From Parasitella parasitica NRRL 2501 (Eukaryota > Fungi > Mucoromycota), in assembly GCA_025201805.1 (NCBI GenBank), contig MU619310.1, positions 2,767 to 66,766 on the forward strand: a stretch of DNA of 64,000 nucleotides, written 5' to 3'. The position numbers and the translations under genes are program-made. Positions 24,258 to 39,523 of this stretch are shown one piece after another. The notes beneath the pieces were generated by a model. That model did not search any database. It was not told where the DNA came from and saw only the letters and a program-made list of their open reading frames with translations. Position 1 is the first letter of the stretch. Every line of letters begins with the position of its first letter.

Positions 24258-26321
24258 ATGCGAAAGTCTACGACTCATTTAAAAGATGTGTCGAGACTTC
24301 TGAGTACAACTGTAGATAATGGGAAAAGCTCTGCAATTCCAATCACTTGCCGGCGGAACTCACATATGCGAGCCATGCTCAATACTTTTTCTCCACTAGA
24401 ACAGCAGTTACTACAACAAACTCTATTCTCTACACAATCATTAATACCCAGCAATAAACGGTCGATATTTCAAAGAGCAATGTCAACTTGCTCTTCGTCA
24501 TCAATTGCCACAGCTGTCATGGAGAAAATACCAGCGGCAACTGTACTGCCAGTTCCCATCCCTTCTTTTACAACACGGAAGCACCCTTCAAGTAGACTAC
24601 ATGGTGCCCTTAATTTTTTTAATATATCAGAACGATTAACATTAGCCGATTTGGACTATGCTATACAACTTCGCAATGCCGATCAAGCCTGGTCCATATT
24701 CGTTACCCTTGCTTCCCGACACGGCAACGACACAATACCCTTGACCCTGTGTTGCTCTTTATACGCCTTGTTGAATTTTGCAAAAAGGCTGACCGGATTC
24801 TCGAATAAAGCATCGAAACTGCGTCAAAAGCAACTTGATCAATTACTGGAATACACAGAATTCCACCAGAGTTCCACAAAGCTGTTTCTGTCATCTGTCA
24901 AAGAAATCCCAATTTCGAGCCACAAGCAATTACAAAAGGCTATTCGAACAGGGAATTACCACGTAGCATGGACGACGTTTTACCGATTTCACAAGGAGAG
25001 CAAAAAGAACACAATGAACCAGTTCAAGTTACCACGGAATACATGCATTCAATTGATGATAATGATGATGAAGGACAAACGGCTGGATAAAAATCAGCTT
25101 AAAACAAAGCTTCAACTAATCGCTCTGCATGGGTCAGGGAATTCAGAGTATGATAGTAGGTACCTGTCAGCTGCCGATCTCGGTCGCTTGGCTTATATTT
25201 GCCGTGGATATCAAAAAAATGCGACAATAGCACATGGTTTGATTGACGAATTTGTGCTGGGATTGCCAAAGAGGAAGCAGTCAAACAGGGCAGATGCGTT
25301 GGATGAGCTGATATGGAGGATTTTGGTCAATGGAGACTTGCACAAGGCGAATCAAGTACTGCAAACGGTTCAACAGAGTATGACAGGCAAGGTGACAATC
25401 AACGAAATGGTATTTGTGAATTTAATGAACGCATATGGGCGGCAAGGAAAACATCACGAGTCGCTAAAGATTTTTGAGCAACTTTTGGAAACCAGGCAGC
25501 AGCCTACGACCAAAGCGTTTAATGCAGTGCTACAAATCTTTGCAGCGCAGGGATCAGCAGACAGGGCCGGGTTTATTTTTGAAACAATGAATCAACTAGA
25601 TGTCAAGCCTGATGCAGCAACTTTTACCGAATTGATTCGAGCCAACGGGCGCGCTGGACATATGAAAATGTGCATTCATTTCTACAACAAAATGCTACAA
25701 AGCCATATCCCACCTAATGTATATACTTACAGCGCACTCATAGAAGCCGCATCACGACGGAACGATATCAAGTCTGTGTTTCGATGGTTCCAAATCATGG
25801 TGTCAGACAATGTCCAACCCAATCAAGTCGTTTTATCCTGTATATTAAAATCACTCTCCAAACAACACGACGAATATCCCAACATGCCCGACGCGGTCCT
25901 TCACATTGCACATCAAGCTGCTATGGCAGGTGTTAAAACTGACGCAGCACTTTATACCATCCTGCTCAAAATGCAGGCAGAATCCACTGGAATTAGCGGA
26001 GCGCTCAAAGTTCATCGTGACATGTTGACACAATCAGTCGAGCCCAACACCTATACTTATACCATACTTATGGATGCTTGCGGCAAGAACAAGATGCCAG
26101 AAACTGCCGAGAAAATATTCGATCTGATGAAGAAAAGCCAACGACATCGGCCCAATACAGTGACCTATAGCGTCATGATGGACGCCTGGCTGAAAGCTAA
26201 TAGACGAGAAAAGGTAGAGTCGCTTAAATTGGAATTTCTGCAGGAATGCAAATCGGATAAAACTGGTCGATTCTGGCTTGACTCGAGAATTGGCAATCGA
26301 ATCAAATCTAGATGCTGTTGA
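24258..26321 (+). CDS. Pentatricopeptide-repeat (PPR) protein, probably mitochondrial
   Basis: 687 aa ORF with tandem ~35 aa repeats (FVNLMNAYGRQG, FNAVLQIFAAQG, PDAATFTELI, PNVYTYSALI, PNTYTYTILM, PNTVTYSVMM) and a basic/Ser-rich N-terminus. Confidence 0.93.
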   Translation: MRKSTTHLKDVSRLLSTTVDNGKSSAIPITCRRNSHMRAMLNTFSPLEQQLLQQTLFSTQSLIPSNKRSIFQRAMSTCSSSSIATAVMEKIPAATVLPVPIPSFTTRKHPSSRLHGALNFFNISERLTLADLDYAIQLRNADQAWSIFVTLASRHGNDTIPLTLCCSLYALLNFAKRLTGFSNKASKLRQKQLDQLLEYTEFHQSSTKLFLSSVKEIPISSHKQLQKAIRTGNYHVAWTTFYRFHKESKKNTMNQFKLPRNTCIQLMIMMMKDKRLDKNQLKTKLQLIALHGSGNSEYDSRYLSAADLGRLAYICRGYQKNATIAHGLIDEFVLGLPKRKQSNRADALDELIWRILVNGDLHKANQVLQTVQQSMTGKVTINEMVFVNLMNAYGRQGKHHESLKIFEQLLETRQQPTTKAFNAVLQIFAAQGSADRAGFIFETMNQLDVKPDAATFTELIRANGRAGHMKMCIHFYNKMLQSHIPPNVYTYSALIEAASRRNDIKSVFRWFQIMVSDNVQPNQVVLSCILKSLSKQHDEYPNMPDAVLHIAHQAAMAGVKTDAALYTILLKMQAESTGISGALKVHRDMLTQSVEPNTYTYTILMDACGKNKMPETAEKIFDLMKKSQRHRPNTVTYSVMMDAWLKANRREKVESLKLEFLQECKSDKTGRFWLDSRIGNRIKSRCC

Positions 26322-27097: not shown

Positions 27098-28098
27098 CTA
27101 ATTATCAAAAACCATACGGTTTGCAACTCTACCAATACCCTTGATCTCAACTTCGACCAAATCCCCATTGTTAAGATAGCGAGGCTCCTTCATGCCCATG
27201 GCGACACCGGCAGGAGTACCAGTCATGATGATAGTACCCTTCTCCAAGGTAGTGCCTTGAGAAATGAAAGAGACGATCTCGGGCACATGGAACAACAGAT
27301 CCGAAGTGTTTGTAGATTGTCTGACCTCGCCATTGACTCTAGTTTCCAGATCAAGGCCGGGACGGTCACCCAAGAGCTTGTTGGAAACGATAACGGGGCC
27401 GATAGGAGCAAATTTGTCGAATCCTTTACTAAAGCACCATTGAGGAACACCGCCAGCGTGCTTGGGGTCTCTTTGCCACAGTCTGTTGGAGACGTCGTTA
27501 CCAACGGTATAGCCAGCAATGTACTCAGAAACGTCGGAAATGGGGATATCTTTGCCAGTTTTGCCAATGACAATTGTCTAATGTATGCATTTGATACGCA
27601 TTAGTTTTCCGGACACGGCACATGCACTTTTATGGGTATCTTACCAATTCTCCCTCATAATCGACAGTAGTTTGCGCAATCTTGGTGATTGGGACGTCCT
27701 CAAAGGTGTCAGCAAGACAGTGGGAAGGCTTGATAAAGACGGACGGATAGGGAGGAGGAGTACGGCCGCCTTCAGCGACTAGAGTGCTCTGATTTAGCGT
27801 GTGGATTTTTAGCAGCAATGGTACACTTACTGTGAGCTTTGTAGTTCAAGCCGATGCATTTGATGATGGGAACCTGGTCTCTGCTGAGAGGAGACAGAAT
27901 CTTGGTGACTTTCTCGACTTGGTCAGTTACAACCGCATCAGAGGAGAACACATCGCCAGTGATGACTTTGGCTTCCAAATTGTCCTTTTCAAACAACCTG
28001 TCTACAGTGGCATCGGCATCAGCGACGATGGGCTCACCAAAGTAAACTTTGCTGTCGGCAGCAACAAAACGGATCAAGCGGTTCCAGACGGGTGACAT
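27098..28098 (-). CDS. FPH1: Fumarylacetoacetate-hydrolase family, probable fumarylpyruvate hydrolase (3 exons)
   Basis: RLIRF, CIGLNYKAH, PSVFIKP, DYEGEL, GNDVSNRLWQ, GGVPQWCFSKGFDKFAPIGP and IMTGTPAGV. Adjacent to other gentisate-pathway genes. Confidence 0.88.
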
Positions 28099-28249
28099 GA
28101 TGGATAAAATACGAGATTGACAGAATCAATTGAGGTAAGGAAGAAGGAGAAGAATGACATGAACTTGCAGATCTGAATTTATACTTGAGCATCTTTTTTT
28201 TTCATGCTGTTCAAATTAGGAAGTGCAAAGTGTGGGGTAGTAGCCAATA

Positions 28250-28261
28250 GGATCAAGTTCC
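28250..28261. promoter_or_regulatory. GGA-N6-TCC palindrome in the divergent hydrolase/TF promoter
   Basis: GGATCAAGTTCC; the same motif is present in all four cluster promoter regions. Confidence 0.6.
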
Positions 28262-28494
28262 TCGGTTGCGCCCATCTGGGTAATCTTAATCATGGCCAGC
28301 CCGCCTTCCCCCAGATGAATGGATGTCTGTGAGAAAAAAAAAGTAAGCACTTAATATGTCGATGGGAAAATTGGAGACCACTAGTAAAGGATGGGAAAGC
28401 AGCCTTTTCCCTTTTCTCTTTTCTCTTCTATTTAACTTTGTCAGTTAGAAACAAAGAGAGAAAGAGAGAGAGAAATCGAGAAAGAGAGAGAAAA

Positions 28495-31347
28495 ATGATA
28501 GTTACCAAAGGCAGCGACGACAGCAGTAAACCAAGCGAAAAAACAACAGGTGACAAAAATAAACCATTGCAGCCGCTTCAGCCAATAGCACCTTCTTCCA
28601 CCCTTGGAACCGAAGCTAGAAAATCGCCCTTGTCGCCTTCAGCCAACACTCGCTCTACTGTTCCGCCCACCAAACGGCGGAAGGTATCTATTGCCTGCCA
28701 TGAATGCAGGACGCACAAGACAAAATGCGACGGAGCCCAGCCAATCTGCGGGTCTTGTCAGAAAAAGAAGCTCCCTGAGGATGCCTGTGCTTACAGCCCT
28801 GAACGTGGAAGACGAGGTGTCAAAAATCAGTAAAGATCAAGTTTGGGGGTTTCGGCATAATTTCCACGACTAATCAGAATGTGTGTCTATAGATACGTGC
28901 AGCTGTTGGAAGATAAGGTGAAGGAGCTCCAAACGGTGATTAGCAAATCGCAAGAGCAGCAATCCAATGTCATCCATTTGCCGCCATTGGCAACATCTGT
29001 GATGCCTGCCCTGGGGAACTCCAACAGATTGCTACATCAAAACTATTTTAATATACCAAGTTCTCCGTCCGATAATATCACATCAAGACCGTTATCTACT
29101 GCTGCTGCTGCTGCTGCTGCTGGTACTGCTAGTACTGCTAGTACTGCTGCTACTACGACTGCTGCAGCGACTACTACTACTGCGACCACTACACCCAGTA
29201 GTCATACTCGAAGGCACACTGAGGGAAGCATCCAGTCATTGGCAACAACTTCATCCAGCACAGATTGGCAGCAACAGCTCGCACAAAACTCACCCTCGTC
29301 ACAGCACGACGTAGATTCAATCAATGACCAACAGCAGAGAGCATCTGCCATTGATGCCATGGGTGCGGTTACCAGTGACAACGACGACCAGAGCGAACGG
29401 ACGTTGACAAGAGATCATCACGGCCAGGGGTATTTTGGTTCATCGAGTGCGGGACGTTTTATGAAGCAGCTCCATGATGCGATTGACAAAAAGACGGCGT
29501 CCAATGGCAGCAATCACTCGCAAGGATCACCCAACTCTGCAAACTCTTCGTTTCGCTCGTCGTTCCAGAGGGACCCACAGCAGCGCAGATTCTCGACAGA
29601 CTTGCTCAGCAACATTGTACTGCCGCCTCGAAAGGTCGCCGACAGCTTATTGGAAAGCTACTGGGTATATGTGCACACTTTGTACCCGTTCCTGCACAAG
29701 CCGTCGTTCATGAAGACGTATTCGCTGCTGTGGGATCAAACTGGTGGCAGCATCAATGAATCCTATGATCTCTATGAATCGGAGAACGAGCCGCTATTCC
29801 AGTGCACACTGAACCTGGTATTTGCGTTGGGTTGTCAGTTATCGCCAGACACTAACGAGAGTGAACGAGAGGTAGCGTCTGACGTGTTTTTCCAGCGATC
29901 CAAGAAGCTGCTCCATTTCGATATCCTGGAAGCGGGAAGCATCAAAGTGGTGCAGGCCCTGTTGCTGATGGGTCAGTATTTGCAGTGCACAAAACTCCCT
30001 GGCAGATGCTGGATTGTGGTAGGGCTGGCCATCCGGGTAGCGCAGGGCATAGGGCTTCATTTGGAGAGAAAGTCAGAGAACCAGCTTGATCGAGAGCTTC
30101 GAAGACGGCTGTGGGGCGGATGCATTGTACTAGACAGAGTTATATCCATGGCTTATGGAAGGCCCTTTATGATTCCCATCTCTCGGGACCTTAAGCTTCC
30201 TCAGGCGATCGACGATGAACTCCTGACTGTGGCGCCCCGCCCTCCTGCTTTGCAGCCCAAAACAAAGCCGAGCCAAATGGCGTTTTTGGTGCACACTATC
30301 CAGCTGTACGAAATCATGGGTGAGATCCTGTTGACGCTTTACTCGGACGGAGAGACGTTTGGAGGCGCTATGGATACTGCCTTCCCTTCTGCTCGATCCG
30401 AAATCGATGGCAGCAATCTGGCAACTAGCCTCAACTCAATCATCAAGCTGGAAATGGCCCTCAGTTCGTGGAAACAGAACTTGCCTCCTTTCCTGCAGCA
30501 CGATCAAGGCAGCGACAGCATTTTTTTGCTAGAAAAAGACGAAAATGAGGCCAAAAAGCTATTGAGGCAGTGCAATGTATTGAAAGCAAGGTATGTATAA
30601 CATTGGAATAGGTTGCGTATTTATGCTCAACTGCTGTATTGCGGCATAGATATCTTCATGTCTGTATATTACTGTACCGCCCTTTATTGGTGTTTTATTT
30701 CACTTTGGAAGAATCAACGAGCCATCATCATCATCATCATCATCATCATTACGCAGATCATGCTGTTACTACGCCGACTGATCTCCAGAAATCTCTATTT
30801 GTACAAAGCTCGCAAAAGTGCGTCAAGATAGCTCAGGATCTTATCAAGACGATTAGTCATAATATCAAAGCGCAGTTGCCTGCCTGGTGGTACAGCATAT
30901 TTTGTAAGCACTAGTAATTTATTTGTGAGCGAAATAATGCAGTTAGACTCATTCACAGGGCGTGTCTTGTACTAGATCTTTACACAGCAGCCACAGTATT
31001 GTTGATGGCAAGGCTGTTCCCCAAAATAAGAGATGTGATAGGGCACGACTCGTTGCTGTCGAGCTGGAATGAATGTCTGCGCTGCATGAAAGAATATCAG
31101 CATTATAGCGTGTCAGCAAAAAAATGCTATGCTTACTTGTCAGAGCTAGAGAATCATGTCTGGGCGGCAACGCATGGTAAGTTGTATGCAGCTGGTTTAC
31201 TCGAGGCAATGCTGACTCATAACCGTTGACAGATCAAGAAAATAACAATGCATCCATTACAATGTCTAGTATCCAGATATTGGGTACATTACCACAAAGG
31301 CAGCAAATAAACGGGCAAATTCAACTGCAAGAACTACCAGCCCAGCC

Positions 31348-31386
<39 letters not shown>

Positions 31387-31630
31387 GCAACAACAACAGC
31401 AGCAGCAGGAGCAGCAGCAGCAACAGCAACAGCAGCACCATCATCCACAGCCATCTGCTGAGTACAACAGTGCATTTAATTACAGTAATAGCAACATTGA
31501 GCATTGGGATTTTGATCTGATGCAGCAAGACATGTCTTGGCTGGGCCGTTTGCCTGTGTATACAGATTTGGAATCCGAATACCAAAATTCATTGAGTGAA
31601 AATGGGCTGGGAGGGTTTTCTTTCTTATAA
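28495..31630 (+). CDS. Zn2Cys6 transcription factor with fungal-specific middle domain; probable cluster regulator (Gtf1-like), 5 exons
   Basis: CHECRTHKTKCDGAQPICGSCQKKKLPEDAC; YFGSSSAGRFM; LPPRKVADSLLESYWVYVHTLYPFLH; AIRVAQGIGLH; RRRLWGGCIVLDR; LPAWWYSIFYLYTAATVL. Contains poly-H and poly-Q tracts. Confidence 0.92.
31348..31437 (+). repeat. CAA/CAG trinucleotide repeat encoding poly-Q in the TF
   Basis: Visible caa/cag run. A CAT run (poly-H) lies at ~30723-30749. Confidence 0.9.
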
Positions 31631-31789
31631 AAGACAAACTAGTATAAACATAGAGAGAGAGAGAGACAGGTTCTTTTTTGTAATAAAATTGTAAAGCTCG
31701 CCACATTTCCTGGTCTTTGCATAGATCAGGGTAACCAGCTGGTAACACTAATTATCTCAGGGCGGAGACTATGTGATGAACCACTTTCT

Positions 31790-31801
31790 GGAAATGCATC
31801 C
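31790..31801. promoter_or_regulatory. GGA-N6-TCC palindrome upstream of the GFA gene
   Basis: GGAAATGCATCC(G), ~130 bp before the ATG. Confidence 0.6.
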
Positions 31802-31931
31802 GACAAGATTAATCGCATTATTGCGATGGCTTCGTGTAACCTGCGCGGAAAGCTTAGTAATTCATAAACTCATATAAATGCGAATCTCTTCTTTTTCTCT
31901 TGTTCAAGATCTATTTAGTACTGAAGCAACA

Positions 31932-32444
31932 ATGACCACGCAATATCAAGGCACATGTATCTGCAAATCAATCCAGATTACGCTTCAGGGCGAACCAGCG
32001 AAAGCAATGGCGTGCCACTGTATCGATTGTCAAAAGTCTGCTGGTGGACCATTTCAAACCTGTGCTATTTACGACACCAAAAACATGCAAGTAAAAGACC
32101 CTGCAGGTCACCTCAAGAAATACGTTTTTCCAAAGGAAACCGTCGGCAGCGGCTTTGAAAAGCACAAATATTTCTGCGGCGTGTGCGGTACTCATTTATA
32201 TAATCAGCCCATGAAGCACAATGGTGAAAAGAGTGTGATTAAAACTGCATTTCTTGATTCTGCCGAAGGCCCTGGGTAAGTTGTAATTTACACACGAGAT
32301 CCGCGTCTGTATACTTATCTTTTTTTTTTTTTTTTTTGTGGCAGTGTCAATTTATTCAAGCCATCTGGTGAGATCTTTACCAAGGACAGAGCTTCTTTCT
32401 TGGACCCCATTGAGGGTCTCAAGCAATTCGAAAAGGGTTTTTAA
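31932..32444 (+). CDS. GFA / CENP-V / Mss4-like zinc protein; candidate maleylpyruvate isomerase (2 exons)
   Basis: GTCICKSI..ACHCIDCQKSAG..YFCGVCGT. Intron 32276-32345, then VNLFKPSGEIFTKDRASFL...KGF*. Confidence 0.85.
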
Positions 32445-32581
32445 AAATAAAAAAATGAATAAAAACAAGCATTTATTATTACATGTTGAAAAATAGAAAC
32501 GAGTGTGTATATTAGTAAATAGATGGTTTGGTTGTATTATACAGATTGGGTTGCGTATGGAAAGTAGAAATACAGGGTTTT

Positions 32582-34212
32582 TCAAGTGGTATAGCGAAAA
32601 TTGGGATGGTTATGGCCCAATTCACCAATCTGCTCGTCAGTGAGGCCATCCAAAAGATAATCTCTTTTGCCCTGTGCTCTTTTTCTGTTTTCCCATCTGC
32701 AGTTCAAGGTTGCCAAGGTAGCACTGATCACAATGACGCATCCTGCGCATAAATTGATGATATGGCCTGCCTTGTACTCTGGAGCCTCTTCAGCCAAATA
32801 GGTCCATGTTGCGACAAGGCCACCCAAGGAACCAACACTCACAGCAAAGGCACTTGCAATAGCTCGCACCATGGGACCAGAGGAATTGTTCACCAGCCAA
32901 GCAACAAACACAGGGCTTCCGGTGAATGCGCCGCAAGTTGCAAAGAAGATGGCCATATACCGCACACCAGTAGTTTCTACGGTCAGCAAAATGATAAACG
33001 CAATGATGATCAGTGGACCAGCAGCAAAAATCAGGATAGGGCCGCGAGTTTTGAACCGATCTGAAATGATGGCAGCAGCAATACAGAATACAGTGCCACA
33101 GGCATACGGAGGCACTGTCATCAGTTGAGATTTGACAGAATCAAAGCCCATAGACGCCAGCAGCGAGGGCATGAAAAGCGCAATCGAGTTCATACATAAA
33201 AGAGAGCAGAATAAGCCAACAGACATAAATACAATGTTCCAGTTTTTTATGCCGAGGACAAAATGGACGTGCTTCAGCTTGCTTTGCTCGTGAGTCAGTG
33301 TTTCAAGGCGGATTCGCATGCACGCAACGTGCTTTTCTTCCTCTGTCAAGAAGGTAGCGCTCTCGGGAGAATCGGGCAAGACAAAGTAGCACGCAACGCC
33401 AGCTGCAAATGTCAAGACGCCCTCAAAAAAGAAAATGTTGCGCCAGGTATGCATTATTCCCCAAGGCGGTATCTTGCTAAACCCAATGGCTAGCAGGCCG
33501 CCAAATGCACCGGCAAGACTGGCAAATGAAGCATAGATGCCAACCCTGGTGACAAGTTCATGACGGCGATAGAACGTAGAGAGCATGTAGGAGATGCCAG
33601 GCATGATGCCAGCTTCGGCAGCTCCGAGGAAAGCACGAGCCGTGGCCAGTCCAGCATAGCTTGTACAGAATGCAAGACACATGGAAACAATACCAAAGGC
33701 AAATACAATCATGGAGAGCCAGATGCGAGGGCCAAATTTCTTACACATGATATTAGTAGGGCTGCGTATATTTTACATGCATTAGTATTGCCACGTATCT
33801 CCTTAAAGGCCTGTTTACGTCTTACATTTCAAAGAGCACATAGGTTATAAAGAAAGTCGTTAACGTAATGCTGAATCTGTTGCCTGTCAAGTCAAGTTCT
33901 TCAGTCATACCAAGATTCTTTGCATTCCCCATGTTGGATCTATATATATATATGTATGAGCACGCTACTGAATAATTTTTTTTTGTTTTAAAAAAAAGAA
34001 GGCATCAGATGTAAATACCTGTCAATAAACGCCATAAGGTAAATCAACGTCGCCATAGGTACAATTCTCATGTCAAATTTGCGCCGAATTCTTGCCTCTA
34101 ACTTGGGATCAATGCTCTCCAGCGCATCGATTTGATCTTCGTGCGAATAATTAACAGATTCAACGCCCTTTTCTTTTTCGCTAACGTTGGCGCTGTTATT
34201 TTGATCAGACAT
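32582..34212 (-). CDS. MFS transporter, Dal5/ACS family; candidate hydroxybenzoate transporter (3 exons)
   Basis: RRKFDMRIVP, AFIDRSNMGNA, LFEIPTN, RAFLGAAEAG, FYRRHEL, WRNIFFFEG, LPDSPESATFLT, MTVPPY and a C-terminal HPNFRY. Confidence 0.92.
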
Positions 34213-34686
34213 GATAATTAAAGTGAATATGGGCCACAAGATGTTGTGCTATTGCGCTTTATTTTATACAAATTTTAGTTGTTCCACACAGGTTTTTTCT
34301 TGTGATCATCTCCCGTCAGATGCGAAAGGGGTTGTAACCATCAAGTGCACATTTATGACTACAAATAGCATAATGGGAGGGGAAAAAAAAGCGTTTGTGA
34401 TCCCACGCTTTTTTTTTTTTTTTTTTNNNNNNNNNNNNNNNNNNNNTCAAGCAATTTTCATGGTTGTTGCTCTCTTTGGATCGTATTAACTCAGTATATG
34501 TAGGCATGACTCTCTTGATCGAGAAGATACGAATGAACGTCTATATTTCCTTCCAGTCTCAAAGTGTTCAGCTCAATTGCAAATTGTATGCACTACTCTT
34601 GATGTAATAATTTTGGGTAAACAAGGCATTCAGGTTTGTCCATGAGAAAATTAAATGCCTGGCTGCCATGGTAACCAAAGTCTACC

Positions 34687-34700
34687 CGGATTTACATCCG
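34687..34700. promoter_or_regulatory. CGGA-N6-TCCG palindrome upstream of the MFS transporter
   Basis: CGGATTTACATCCG: inverted CGG half-sites, as is typical for Zn2Cys6 binding. Confidence 0.65.
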
Positions 34701-35121
34701 ACTTGGTCTCCAATGTTCTTGGACTTCGATAGCAGTGTTGCAATTTTTTTATTTTTTTTATTTTTTTGCTTGTATTTGTCAGTATATAGTAAATACTACG
34801 CTAGTTGGTCATCTCTGGGTGAATGATCAACTCTATCAGCATAGCATCTAGTAATCTATATTTTACCTGTCAAATTAAAGACAGGAGATATTATGTGAAT
34901 TATATAAATTTAAAACTAGTAAATAACAGCGCTAACCGTTAATGTTGCTGCAGATATTGCATGTATATGTAGTGTACGCTTCATTCCCGTCAAGGAAAAT
35001 GATTACTTCTTACATACATCCGTAGAGTACGAGAGTTTTTAGTTGCACACAGATATTCTATTTAACAAAGAGAGAGAGAGATAGGGCCCCCAAAAAAAAA
35101 GATACTATTCACGGTTTTTTT

Positions 35122-36134
35122 TTATTTTATTTCAACTTTATAAAGCCCAAGATTCTCTTGAAGAGGCTTATCATTGAATGAAAATAGGTAAGAGTCAACG
35201 TTTTCGTCAGAGTGATGAGTAATCCAGCTCCAGGCAGGGACAACAAATGTGTCGTTCAACTTCCATCTCAGTACAGTCTTGTTCCCTTTGACATCAACGA
35301 GCTCAGAGTAACCTTGACCAGCGTATATATGTGCAACTCGCGAGCAAGTTTCACGTCGAGTAACAGATGCCTTGCCAGCATTGATGCGTTCTGCTTCGCC
35401 GCCAATGATACGAGATAAAGGCTTTCCGTCGGGTTTTCTGTATTCGTAATCAGCATACGCGGTATCCAATTTGCTGGCATTCAGCGCTTCTTCGACAGGC
35501 TCCCAAGAGAATTTCAATGAACTGTTTTCAGCGTTTTCGCTAGGATATCTGCGTTCTTCATAATTCTCTGCAAAATTAACGGGAATGTTCTGAAAGATGG
35601 GGAGATCAAGGCCATCCAACCAAATCATGACATCGTCACCCTCATGGCCATGATCGTGCCACGTCCATGGAGGAGTGAGGATAACGTCGCCCTTGTTCAT
35701 GTAAATCTTTTCGCCCTCCACAGCAGTAAACCCACGATGGCCTTCGATTATGAAGCGGAGAGCAAAGGCTCTGTGTCTGTGCGCAGGCGCAGTTTCCCCT
35801 GGGTTGATCAGCTGCAAACCGGCATATAGAGTGTCGGTGGTATAAGGTGCCTCTGTTTATGGAATTAATATAAACAGATGTGTAACCAATCCGGGATCAA
35901 CTTACTCATGCTAGGATTTACCAGCATCAAAACCCTTCTTTCAGCTTCGTACTCGCCTACCTTCTCGCCAGCTTCCAGTAGCGCTGGTCTGATCTTTTCG
36001 TATTCCCATAAATGTGGGACGCATTTAGGGTTGGGATGAGGAGGAACCATGGCTTCCATGACGGTCCAGAGTGGCTCGACATGGGAGCCGTCGTATTTCT
36101 TGAGGAAATCGCAGTTGTTTGCTTCAGCCAGCAT
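35122..36134 (-). CDS. GDX1: Gentisate 1,2-dioxygenase (bicupin), 2 exons
   Basis: PLW..MVPPHPNP, EAERRVLMLVNP, TTDTLYAGLQLINPGETAPAHRH, GDVILTPPWTWHDHG, WLDGLDLP and YLFSFNDKPL. The His ligands HRH/HDH are intact. Confidence 0.95.
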
Positions 36135-36161
36135 TTTTCTTTTTTTGTGATAAATTGAGGG

Positions 36162-36198
<37 letters not shown>

Positions 36199-36283
36199 GT
36201 GTGGACAAGGTATTTATATATCGTCTCGGCTGTGTGCATTGACTTTCATGCTTGTCAAAGTTCATCCGTGAAGCTTGATTCCA

Positions 36284-36320
36284 GGAACACAGATCCATCC
36301 ATCCAATAGGATCTATTTCC
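36284..36320. promoter_or_regulatory. GGA-N7-TCC (36284-36296) and GGA-N6-TCC (36309-36320) in the divergent dioxygenase/monooxygenase promoter
   Basis: GGAACACAGATCC and GGATCTATTTCC, with additional GGATC half-sites nearby. Confidence 0.6.
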
Positions 36321-36586
36321 AATAAGCAGTTACGAATAGGATCGAATGTATGCAATGGATCACTATTTGAATGATTCTCACTTTATTAAACATGGATCTA
36401 TTCACAGATATTTGTAACCGATACATTAGAGATTTGCCTCACAGAGTCTATAGCAAATTTCCCACAATTTTCATCTATAAAATGCACCATACTCTACTCT
36501 TTGTTTTCTTTTTTTCTTTTTTCTTTTTCATCAAGCAAACGGGATTTCTTTCTCTGAAAAACACAATAAAGTGAAAAAAAAAAAAA

Positions 36587-38032
36587 ATGGTAAAAACTCT
36601 TTCTGTTATTGTTGTAGGCGGTGGTCTCGGTGGTTTAGCTACTGCAATTGCACTGAAGCGTGCCGGTCATAAAGTCACCGTCTTGGAAGGCGCCAAGCAA
36701 CTCAGTGAAGTAGGTGCCGGCATCCAGGTTCCTCCCAATACCTCTCGTATTCTCGACGCCTGGGGTCTATTGGAAAAGTTCAAGACCAAAGTGGTTTGGC
36801 CTGGTAATATTAACATGAGAAGATACTCTACGGGCGAAATTATTGGCAGTACTCCGTTGAAGCCAAGGATGACTGACCGCTATGGCTACCCGTAAGTATA
36901 TGCAAGCGCAAGTTGCTCGTCTAGTACAATATGACTGATATCCCTTGCCCATAGCTATTTGCTTATTCATCGCGCTGACTATCTGCAACTATTGTATGAT
37001 GCTTCTATTGAAATTGGAGTCGAGGTTGTTTTGGATGCTCGAGTCGAATCTGTAGATGATAAAGCTGTTGCTGTCAGACTAGCAAACGGCGGTGTTTATA
37101 CAGGCGATCTCATTATCGGTGCTGATGGCATTCGTTCCAACGTCCGTGCTGCTGTTATTCCAGACGAAACTATCCTTCCCAAAAAGTCCACCAACTGTGC
37201 TTATCGTGCCACTGTTCCTGTTGACGTTATGCGCTCTGACCCAGAGATCTCTCACTTGATAGATGATATTAATTCCAACTGCTGGATTGGCTATCGACGC
37301 CATATCATGGCTTATCCCATGAGAGGTGGTGAGTTGTACAACCTTGTCATGTCCCATCCCGGCGAAGCTGCTGTTGGAAAATGGAACGAGCCTGGTAATT
37401 TGGACGAGATGAAATACCATTACAGAAACTTTGACCCAGTCATCCAAAAAGTCCTCACTCATGTCACTGGTTGCTTAAAGTGGACATTGGCTGATTTGCC
37501 CGTGTTGAGTCATTGGGTCAGTCCTAGCGGAAGAATGGCCCTTATAGGTGATGCTGCTCATGCCATGCTTCCTTATCTTGCTCAGGTTTGTATTAAATAA
37601 GCTGTCTACAAAAAAAACAATGCTAATGCCATCGATTTATAGGGAGCCGCTCAAGCCATTGAAGACGGTGCCACTCTTGGCATCCTGTTCTCTCAAATTG
37701 AGTCTGTAGATGAAATTCCTGCTCTTTTGAGACTGTACGAGAAGATTCGCAGGCCGCGTGCCGAAAAGATTCAAAAGGGCGCGCTTGATAATGGTGACAT
37801 TTGGCACATGCCTGATGGCGATGATCAAATTGCTCGTGATAAAGCCATGAAGATTGTTGTTTCGGATGACACTGTTCAAAAGGTGCATGTAAAGAACCCC
37901 AATCAATGGTCCGATGGTGATTTCCAGCCTTGGTTATTTGGACATGATGCCATTAGTGTTGCAAAGAAGGCTCTAGCAAGTGAAAAATCGAAAGGCTACA
38001 GCAGCAGTGTAGAGGAAAGAGCAAGTCTTTAG
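36587..38032 (+). CDS. FAD-dependent aromatic monooxygenase (salicylate hydroxylase family); probable 3-hydroxybenzoate 6-hydroxylase, 3 exons
   Basis: GGGLGG, EVGAGIQVPPN, HRAD, IGADGIRS and LIGDAAHAMLPYLAQGAAQAIEDG. Divergent from the gentisate dioxygenase. Substrate is inferred from context only. Confidence 0.85.
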
Positions 38033-38474
38033 AGGTCTTTTTACATGGCTAGTGGATATTTGTATATGTGAATATTATTTATTTGAATAGAATAAGCTTT
38101 TGTGATAGCAGGTTTTTTTTTTTTCGTTTTTCTTTTTTTACCACATAATATGAGATGCCTAGTTTCAAAAGACTGCCTTCGTCAATCACATTATCACAAA
38201 TGCGTATTCCTCTTATTACGGGCTGTGTCGAAAAGTTATTCTTGTTTCATATGTCAGTAAAAGTTACGATATAGGTCTCTCCCCCTCTCCCCCCCCCCAC
38301 AATAATTTTGAGATTATCAATGGTACCGTAGTAACAACACATTCCTTGCGACATGTCAGGTTTACGGAAGAATGTTTTTACTTTCAGTAACTGACTGTGA
38401 ATAGTTTTTTGTTTATTTACTTTCACTGGGTTCTTTTGGGAAATGAGGCTTCTTTAGTAAACCAAGATAGTTCA

Positions 38475-39523
38475 ATGAGTGCTGGTAAGCTTGCTTGAGT
38501 GCTATAGGAAAACCTCCCAGTAGCTAAAATAATAAAGTCAAGTTTCCCCCTGGTATCAAGGTTTTTAGCAAGATTGCTGATTTCAGACAATGGCGTCGTA
38601 GTCTCCTTTTAGAGCAAAAGACGCTTGGTTATGTGCCTACTATGGGGGCACTTCACCAAGGCCATCTTTCGTTGGGTAGGCGTATACTGTCAAATAACAG
38701 AAACCTTGAGAATAACCATACATTTATAGTACAGGCGGCAAAGGAGCGCTGCGACCATGTAGCCCTCACCGTTTTTGTCAACCCGGCTCAATTTGCCCCC
38801 ACTGAAGATCTCGCCACCTATCCTCGTACCCTACAAACCGATCTTGACAAACTTGCCAATTTAGGGGCTGGAGTTGCATCTGCTGTGCTAGTGCCTCAAG
38901 TGGAAGAGATGTATCCTGCTGGTATTGATTTGGATGTGAGCCGACAAAAGGGAACGTTTGTGGAGGTGCTTGGGCTCTCTAACCAGCTGGAAGGTGTCAC
39001 TCGGCCTAATTTTTTCCGTGGTGTATCTACTGTTGTGTCCAAGTTCTTGAACATTGTTCAGCCTGACGATGTATTTTTTGGGCAAAAAGACATCCAGCAA
39101 TGTTTTGTTATCCGCAACATGATACGAGATTTGCATTTCCCAACCAACATGCACATTTGCCCCACTGTGCGCGATGAAAATGGGTTGGCTCTGTCCTCGC
39201 GAAATGCGTACCTGACACCGTCTCAACGCAAGCACGCACTGGTGTTGTCACAATCACTCAGACACATGGAAGGTTTGTACAGGTCTGGCAATAGAAATGC
39301 TGCCGCCCTTGCTGAAGCAGGCGTGGAGCTGATTGAAAAGGCCCGCCAGCAGGTAGAAGCGTTGGACGAGGGCTGGAAGATCAAGTTGGACTATGTCTCT
39401 ATTAATTCAGCAGATGATTTGACCGAATTAAAGGGAGAGATTCCCAAACAAGATGGCTGTGTGATTAGCATGGCAGTCTTTGTTGGCAGCACTCGATTAA
39501 TTGATAATTTAGTTTTAAATTAA
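38475..39523 (+). CDS. PAN6: Pantoate--beta-alanine ligase (pantothenate synthetase)
   Basis: YVPTMGALHQGHLSL, FVNPAQFAPTEDL, FGQKDIQQ, GLALSSRN and TRLIDN. Two short introns. Confidence 0.95.

Follow-up and report, generated by a model that had tools for sequence, protein, structure and literature searches.

A predicted gentisate-pathway gene cluster in Parasitella parasitica and a promoter palindrome it shares with other Mucoromycotina

We analysed a window of 64,000 nt from Parasitella parasitica NRRL 2501 (GCA_025201805.1, contig MU619310.1, positions 2,767-66,766 of the forward strand; all coordinates below are those of the window), in which positions 27098-38032 hold six intact, spliced and adjoining genes. 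They encode a FAH-family hydrolase (FAH), a Zn2Cys6 transcription factor (TF), a GFA-domain protein (GFA), an MFS transporter (MFS), a gentisate 1,2-dioxygenase (GDO) and a FAD monooxygenase (MNX), and we consider it likely, with a probability of roughly 0.85, that the locus represents, in P. parasitica, the catabolic cluster for the gentisate pathway known from other fungi. The interval ends exactly with the stop codons of FAH (27098) and MNX (38032) and contains two divergent gene pairs, FAH/TF and GDO/MNX. A Pfam scan of the open frames between 27.1 and 38.0 kb recovered exactly six domains, namely FAA_hydrolase (27098-27373, minus strand), Zn_clus (28438-28833, plus) with Fungal_trans downstream of it (28879-30600, plus), GFA (31878-32279, plus), MFS_1 (32582-33748, minus), Cupin_2 (35122-35817, minus) and FAD_binding_3 (36587-36895 and 36959-37600, plus), if the two domains of the TF are counted together. 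The cluster is flanked by a PPR gene (24258-26321) on one side and by a gene for pantoate-beta-alanine ligase (PAN6; 38633-39523) on the other. A previous sequence-only reading of the window, made by a model from the letters and their open reading frames, had described the same six contiguous intact genes with two divergent pairs between PPR and PAN6, and this description held, with the domains in place and stop-free spliced models for 6/6 genes.

Similarity searches were run exon by exon, while joined exon chains were used to check phase and stops, to give the codon context of single-nucleotide polymorphisms (SNPs) and to test equality with the NCBI proteins P0135 and P0124. Contigs of four public sequencing runs, one of them an RNA run, were placed on positions 32300-38100, and the transcript and assembly-gap results given below refer to that interval. 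The GDO gene (35122..36134, minus strand; exons 36134-35906 and 35852-35122) encodes a Cupin_2 protein of 319 aa, identical to the NCBI P. parasitica protein P0124, and the MNX gene (36587..38032, plus strand; exons 36587-36891, 36955-37585 and 37643-38032) encodes a FAD_binding_3 protein of 441 aa; both lengths are those annotated in Mucor bainieri. The RNA contigs skip three canonical introns, one in GDO (35853-35905, reading CT..AC on the plus strand and thus a minus-strand intron) and the two of MNX (36892-36954 and 37586-37642, both GT..AG). The three-exon model of the MFS gene (32582..34212, minus strand; exons 34212-34019, 33939-33826 and 33761-32582; MFS_1) gives 495 aa, identical to P0135 of P. 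parasitica.

The introns of the FAH gene (27098..28098, minus strand; exons 28098-27831, 27778-27645 and 27577-27098; FAA_hydrolase, 1.2e-27) were predicted from GT..AG candidates and homology. Its product of 293 aa has the length of the M. bainieri product, and the exons align end to end with Fph1 of Candida parapsilosis (residues 1-90, 93-136 and 138-293). The single intron (GTAAGT..CAG) of the GFA gene (31878..32444, plus strand; exons 31878, or from an ATG at 31932, to 32275 and 32345-32444; Pfam GFA, 6.8e-22) was likewise predicted. For the TF gene (28495..31630, plus strand; exons 28495-28829, 28893-~30590, ~30650-~30903, ~30943-31176 and 31233-31630) several stop-free models with five exons and four introns were obtained, in which the junctions near 30590-30650 and 30904-30975 are approximate. 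The resulting size of ~950-970 aa fits the Mucor orthologues (925-974 aa), and tblastn with C. parapsilosis Gtf1 and with Mucor and Parasitella factors of 925-974 aa covered 28495-31627 in three frames. The NCBI model of this factor for the strain (P0255, 786 aa) stops near 31226; another P. parasitica record (941 aa) and the Mucor factors run on past the intron 31177-31232 into 31233-31630. P0255 is thus probably truncated, with internal segments missing as well. A second P. parasitica GDO record (P0129, CEP11900.1) was merely 91-96% identical to positions 35122-36134 in tblastn, unlike the strain seen in the reads, which differs by ~0.4% at the DNA level; P0129 is either a mis-modelled gene or comes from a markedly divergent isolate.

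The point of reference for these genes is the gentisate-pathway cluster of C. parapsilosis (MNX2, HBT1, GDX1, FPH1, GFA1, GTF1; Holesova 2011, Zeman 2016, Cillingova 2022). The sequence-only reading had equated the two gene sets, and this stood for five genes, as FAH, TF, GFA, GDO and MNX are homologous to Fph1, Gtf1, Gfa1, Gdx1 and Mnx2, respectively. Over aligned residues, 183/288 positions were identical between FAH and Fph1, 173/304 between GDO and Gdx1, and 247/403 between MNX and Mnx2, the last contiguously over three exons; GFA shared 40/103 with Gfa1, and the zinc-cluster (DNA-binding) region of the TF shared 26/55 with Gtf1. In tblastn with C. parapsilosis Gtf1, the middle domain was found at 1.5e-66 and the zinc cluster at 44% identity. 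The best NCBIfam match of GDO was TIGR02272 (gentisate 1,2-dioxygenase; 1.4e-56), and its best Protein Data Bank (PDB) matches were gentisate 1,2-dioxygenases, with the metal histidines of the HRH and WHDH motifs aligned to 2D40 and kept as well in the alignment to the bacterial structure 3BU7. MNX matched NF006021 (3-hydroxybenzoate 6-monooxygenase; 1.7e-34) best and salicylate 1-monooxygenase second best. The PDB matches of FAH exon 3 were generic FAH-family enzymes, which do not fix its substrate, and a PDB search with the 44 aa of FAH exon 2 returned no match. Gdx1-type, Mnx2 and Fph1 queries against the whole 32.8 Mb genome matched solely in the cluster exons; by this search, GDO, MNX and FAH are single-copy orthologues in P. 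parasitica.

The transporter is the part of the equation that did not stand. An assignment of MFS as the HBT1 orthologue was rejected, as BLASTP against C. parapsilosis Hbt1 gave E = 0.96 and the two proteins fall into different NCBIfam subfamilies, leaving, as judged from the sequences, a functional analogy only. The best NCBIfam match of MFS was TIGR00893 (anion:cation symporter, 2.A.1.14; 1.1e-44, profile positions 53-392/399), which fits the Dal5-family label given to it in the sequence-only reading; the score of 153 bits is under the curated bacterial cut-off of 395, and by this profile the protein is a probable member of the family. Hbt1 matched drug:H+ antiporter-like profiles best and was classed as DHA1/AAHS by its authors (PMC5566891). 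No close relative of Hbt1 was found in the P. parasitica genome, where the best stretch, on another contig, reached 32% over 146 aa. An MFS of the same type as that of Parasitella (63% identical) is clustered with TF, MNX, GDO and FAH in Pyronema omphalodes, a pezizomycete. The Parasitella protein is a candidate for a new Dal5-like permease of aromatic acids in eukaryotes.

Overall, the cluster proved to be widely conserved. The best GDO matches came from Mucor (90%; the 90% cluster includes M. lusitanicus, M. circinelloides, M. velutinosus, M. fragilis, M. ambiguus and M. plumbeus), followed by Benjaminiella, Fennellomyces, Zychaea, Lichtheimia, Backusella, Umbelopsis and Syncephalastrum (66-77%) and then by Ascomycota (at most 60%). 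The window is collinear with an M. bainieri contig from an EF-hand gene and PAN6 through the six cluster genes, at 70-81% nucleotide identity within genes, and the order MNX(-) GDO(+) MFS(+) GFA(-) TF(-) FAH(+) recurs unchanged in M. bainieri, Benjaminiella poitrasii and Umbelopsis vinacea. The mucoralean host proposed in the sequence-only reading was confirmed, as the main MFS exon was 100% identical over 388 aa to a P. parasitica protein, with Mucor (90%), Benjaminiella (75%), Fennellomyces, Circinella and Zychaea next; an ascomycete host is excluded, and P. parasitica belongs to the Mucoraceae within the Mucorales. Judged from these comparisons, the cluster is common in Mucorales and, because its gene order is shared from Umbelopsis to Mucor, is older than the split between Mucorales and Umbelopsidales. 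GFA lies beside TF in Mucor, Benjaminiella, Syncephalastrum and Candida alike, and the annotated members in Backusella are MNX-GDO-MFS only.

Several loci showed peculiarities of their own. The annotation of U. vinacea (L002, 14132-18211) joins GFA to TF in a product of 1033 aa with Zn_clus, Fungal_trans and GFA domains, a fusion that is probably a gene-model error. In Syncephalastrum racemosum (L008, 15312-20822) the FAH-TF-GFA block is inverted compared to Mucor. The locus of Lichtheimia hyalospora (L006, 847-11058) is rearranged, with a mitochondrial carrier gene beside GFA, two tandem FAH genes and then MNX and GDO; the carrier deserves mention, since work on Candida ties mitochondrial carriers to the gentisate pathway.

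According to PMC8929692, growth on 3-hydroxybenzoate raises expression of the C. parapsilosis cluster 267- to 3061-fold, a knockout of gtf1 is unable to grow on 3-hydroxybenzoate or gentisate, and Gtf1p binds GGA-N7-TCC in electrophoretic mobility shift assays. In the window, GGA-N7-TCC was not enriched (3 sites compared to 9 expected), and the cluster holds a lone N7 site in the GDO/MNX promoter (36284-36296). Over the full window, the shorter palindrome GGA-N6-TCC showed no enrichment either (8 sites, 9.1 expected). Four of these eight, however, lie in the cluster spacers, which total 2.15 kb and in which 0.27 would be expected, one in each promoter region: the divergent FAH/TF promoter (28250..28261), upstream of GFA (31790..31801), upstream of MFS beyond an assembly gap (34688..34699) and the divergent GDO/MNX promoter (36309..36320). 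All four are predicted operators. Among the other spacings in the P. parasitica cluster spacers, N3-N5 and N8-N10 were found 0 times, N7 once and N11 twice.

The same spacing recurs in related loci, the share of N6 sites lying in cluster promoters being 5/5 in M. bainieri, 4/5 in Benjaminiella, 4/8 in Umbelopsis, 3/5 in Syncephalastrum and 2/3 in Backusella. Over the six Mucoromycotina loci including the window, 22 promoter N6 sites were counted compared to ~3.1 expected, and other spacings between N3 and N11 were not enriched; the spacers of Parasitella and Mucor are no longer alignable. In the Candida locus it is N7 that is enriched, with 8/10 sites in spacers (1.6 expected). This supports a self-regulated cluster whose predicted operator would keep the half-sites of the Candida one at a spacing one bp shorter, and it offers an orthologous pair of Zn2Cys6 regulators with predicted sites that differ by one bp in spacing.

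GDO, MNX and MFS are transcribed, with spliced RNA contigs over GDO and MNX and RNA contigs on the main MFS exon. The loose ends in the RNA run are sequencing adapters, depth across the GDO/MNX spacer is zero, and contig depth is unsuited to ranking the genes by expression. A second strain of P. parasitica differed at 24 positions in 5.8 kb; 11 of the 13 coding SNPs were synonymous and all three indels (3/3) non-coding, which shows purifying selection. In one RNA contig of low depth (run X7), 50 nt (33447-33496) with GT..AG on the plus strand are skipped within an exon of the minus-strand MFS gene. The skipped stretch was rejected as an MFS intron, being on the opposite strand and inside the exon, where its removal would break the frame. 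The contig looks like a rare spliced antisense transcript, perhaps arising by read-through from the convergent GFA gene.

Taken as a gentisate-pathway cluster, the locus would work as follows. The MFS permease would import a hydroxybenzoate, the FAD monooxygenase would convert 3-hydroxybenzoate to gentisate, and the cupin dioxygenase would open the ring of gentisate to give maleylpyruvate. The GFA-domain protein is a candidate for a glutathione-dependent maleylpyruvate isomerase, the role hypothesised for GFA1 in PMC8929692, and the FAH-family hydrolase would split fumarylpyruvate into fumarate and pyruvate. The cluster-encoded Zn2Cys6 factor would activate all genes, most likely through GGA-N6-TCC in each of the four promoter regions. 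Substrates, induction, operator and the isomerase role are what we infer here by orthology with the characterised C. parapsilosis genes. The chemistry is that of bacterial gentisate operons, which likewise combine a hydroxylase, a gentisate 1,2-dioxygenase, an isomerase, a hydrolase and an MFS permease. Examples of such operons are the nag, mhb and gen loci with their GenK/MhbT permeases; their isomerases are of the GST-zeta type, mycothiol- or Cys-dependent and without a GFA domain, their regulators belong to the LysR or IclR families, and their genes have no introns.

Compared to the C. parapsilosis cluster, six genes with the same six roles are present, five of them orthologous, with identities over aligned residues of 57-64% for the three enzymes, 39% for GFA and ~36-47% for regions of the TF. 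Both clusters also have TF and GFA adjacent and in the same orientation, MNX at one end, and GGA/TCC half-sites in promoter palindromes. They differ in the transporter (Dal5-like in Parasitella compared to Hbt1, of DHA1 or AAHS type, without detectable pairwise similarity) and in gene order, as Candida has FPH1 placed between GFA1 and GDX1, and its GDX1 is not divergent to MNX2. Further differences are the introns of the Parasitella genes (the Candida genes are intron-less), the spacing of N6 compared to N7, and a TF that is ~200 aa longer. The gentisate catabolism (GC) cluster of Pezizomycotina (for example Aspergillus fumigatus Afu4g01480-01550; Greene et al. 2014, PMC3914699) shares a gentisate dioxygenase, a fumarylpyruvate hydrolase, a flavin hydroxylase, a C6 factor and an MFS with the Parasitella cluster and typically adds a stilbene dioxygenase, an aldehyde dehydrogenase and a salicylate-hydroxylase-type enzyme, which the Parasitella cluster does not have.

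A number of points weigh against reading the locus as a cluster for 3-hydroxybenzoate. The nearest PDB structures to MNX are decarboxylating hydroxylases and an unnamed FAD protein rather than the bacterial 3HB6H, and its substrate specificity rests for this reason on the 61% identity to Mnx2. The substrate of MFS is a guess, because the protein has no homology to Hbt1, for which hydroxybenzoate transport is proven. The N6 motif was chosen after inspection of the sequence, and in Pyronema, as in the rearranged locus of Lichtheimia, its pattern is weak or missing. The RNA evidence comes from one run with no stated growth condition and covers 3/6 genes, and full-text literature searches for functional, growth or biochemical work on gentisate in Mucorales, Mucoromycota or Mucor returned none. 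An alternative explanation is that the pathway is entered from another substrate, with MNX acting as a salicylate 5-hydroxylase or on another hydroxybenzoate and the Dal5-like permease importing that compound, for example plant or host phenolics met by the mycoparasite. The departure of the transporter from the Hbt1 family, the second-best profile of MNX and its nearest PDB entries, which have other specificities, would all fit such a substrate, as would the salicylate-hydroxylase-type enzyme of Pezizomycotina gentisate clusters described in PMC3914699 and PMC8929692. However, the best family of MNX is 3-hydroxybenzoate 6-monooxygenase and the characterised Mnx2 is its 61% identical counterpart (aligned residues); its placement divergent to GDO was also counted on this side, "as in Candida", for which the gene order is given above. 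We therefore regard another entry substrate as improbable.

It could further be argued that the six genes are mere neighbours, brought together by chance or left as a relic, and do not form a co-regulated functional unit. The transcripts checked are those of three of the six genes, which leaves room for this explanation; against it, the order is kept in at least four Mucorales genera and in Umbelopsis while the flanks differ in distant species, the promoters have a palindrome in common, the strains show purifying selection between them, and the arrangement parallels the proven Candida regulon. We consider a chance arrangement very improbable, and the gentisate-pathway cluster remains the reading that we prefer.

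The sequence-only reading had taken the cluster to be undescribed in Mucoromycota, which is not the case. Zeman et al. 2016 (PMC5144973) found MNX2, GDX1 and FPH1 clustered with a transcription factor in Mucorales and suggested that Ascomycota were the source, by horizontal transfer. Cillingova et al. 2022 (PMC8929692) reported the same for Mucoromycota together with a GTF1 phylogeny that includes Mucoromycota sequences; in both, homologues of MNX2, GDX1 and FPH1 lie together with the factor in genomes of the Mucor/Phycomyces type. PMC8929692 also cites the cluster as CF_000060 of Marcet-Houben and Gabaldon 2019. With a conserved order in several genera and these earlier papers, the cluster is both common and already documented in Mucorales, and ours is the cluster of PMC5144973 in one more species, with no essential difference. 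Its presence in Mucorales, its similar organisation and the idea of a transfer across phyla are already published, and NCBI already lists the proteins of P. parasitica. The available parts of PMC5144973 and PMC8929692 on the Mucorales cluster make no mention of the non-orthologous transporter, a promoter motif or Umbelopsis. The additions made here are minor, namely the non-orthologous permease, the conserved N6 palindrome, the extension to Umbelopsis, and the transcript and population evidence from P. parasitica. The locus thus has little weight as a discovery and its residual value is practical, as it provides a clean and experimentally tractable prediction of hydroxybenzoate catabolism in Mucorales.

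How the cluster reached the Mucoromycotina was approached with a maximum-likelihood tree of GDO built from 53 named sequences, paralogues included, with no outgroup and no Basidiomycota. Mucorales and Umbelopsis formed one clade (SH-aLRT 99), placed on the side of the non-pezizomycete Pezizomycotina, with a branch of support 96 between it and Saccharomycotina plus Pezizomycetes. This is broadly in line with the idea, put forward in PMC5144973 and PMC8929692, that an ancestor of the Mucoromycotina received the cluster from an ascomycete by horizontal transfer, as opposed to vertical descent with many losses. The clustered Dal5-like MFS of Pyronema points in the same direction, and the best 120 GDO matches include no Mortierellomycotina, Glomeromycotina or Basidiomycota. 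As a proof of transfer, however, the tree failed, since the approximately unbiased (AU) test keeps a tree in which Pezizomycotina are held together (p = 0.077), and the sampling just described tells against it too. The cluster is old in Mucoromycotina, and a transfer, if there was one, would therefore date far back and be difficult to separate from vertical descent with losses. We therefore give a transfer somewhat less than even odds. More doubtful still is a fuller scenario, which we offer as tentative, in which an early Pezizomycotina-like ascomycete passed the whole self-regulated cluster, with its regulator, operator and enzymes, to the ancestor shared by Mucorales and Umbelopsidales, where it became a distinct ancient regulon variant with a Dal5-like permease and an N6 operator, which in the mycoparasite Parasitella may serve to consume or detoxify hydroxybenzoates of the host or of plants. 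In the same tree, the GDO of Lipomyces starkeyi (L005, 8697-11166) sits on a very long branch; a flavin-reductase gene lies beside it, and no other gentisate-pathway gene was found within the 15 kb examined around it.

The assembly is interrupted once within the cluster, by a run of N at 34427-34446 in an intergenic poly-T tract (its left flank is T17), which lies 215 nt upstream of the MFS ATG (34212), in the spacer that separates this gene from the GDO stop (35122). The counterpart spacer in M. bainieri measures 1.1 kb and has no called gene. DNA contigs of three runs (X1, X3 and X4) end at 34399 and resume at 34447, the right-hand contigs having 22 T as a loose end, and none of the contigs of the four runs crosses the gap, which is a homopolymer run without fixed length in a promoter region. 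No reading frame is affected, because the gap lies in the MFS/GDO spacer and the gene models on both sides are independent of it.

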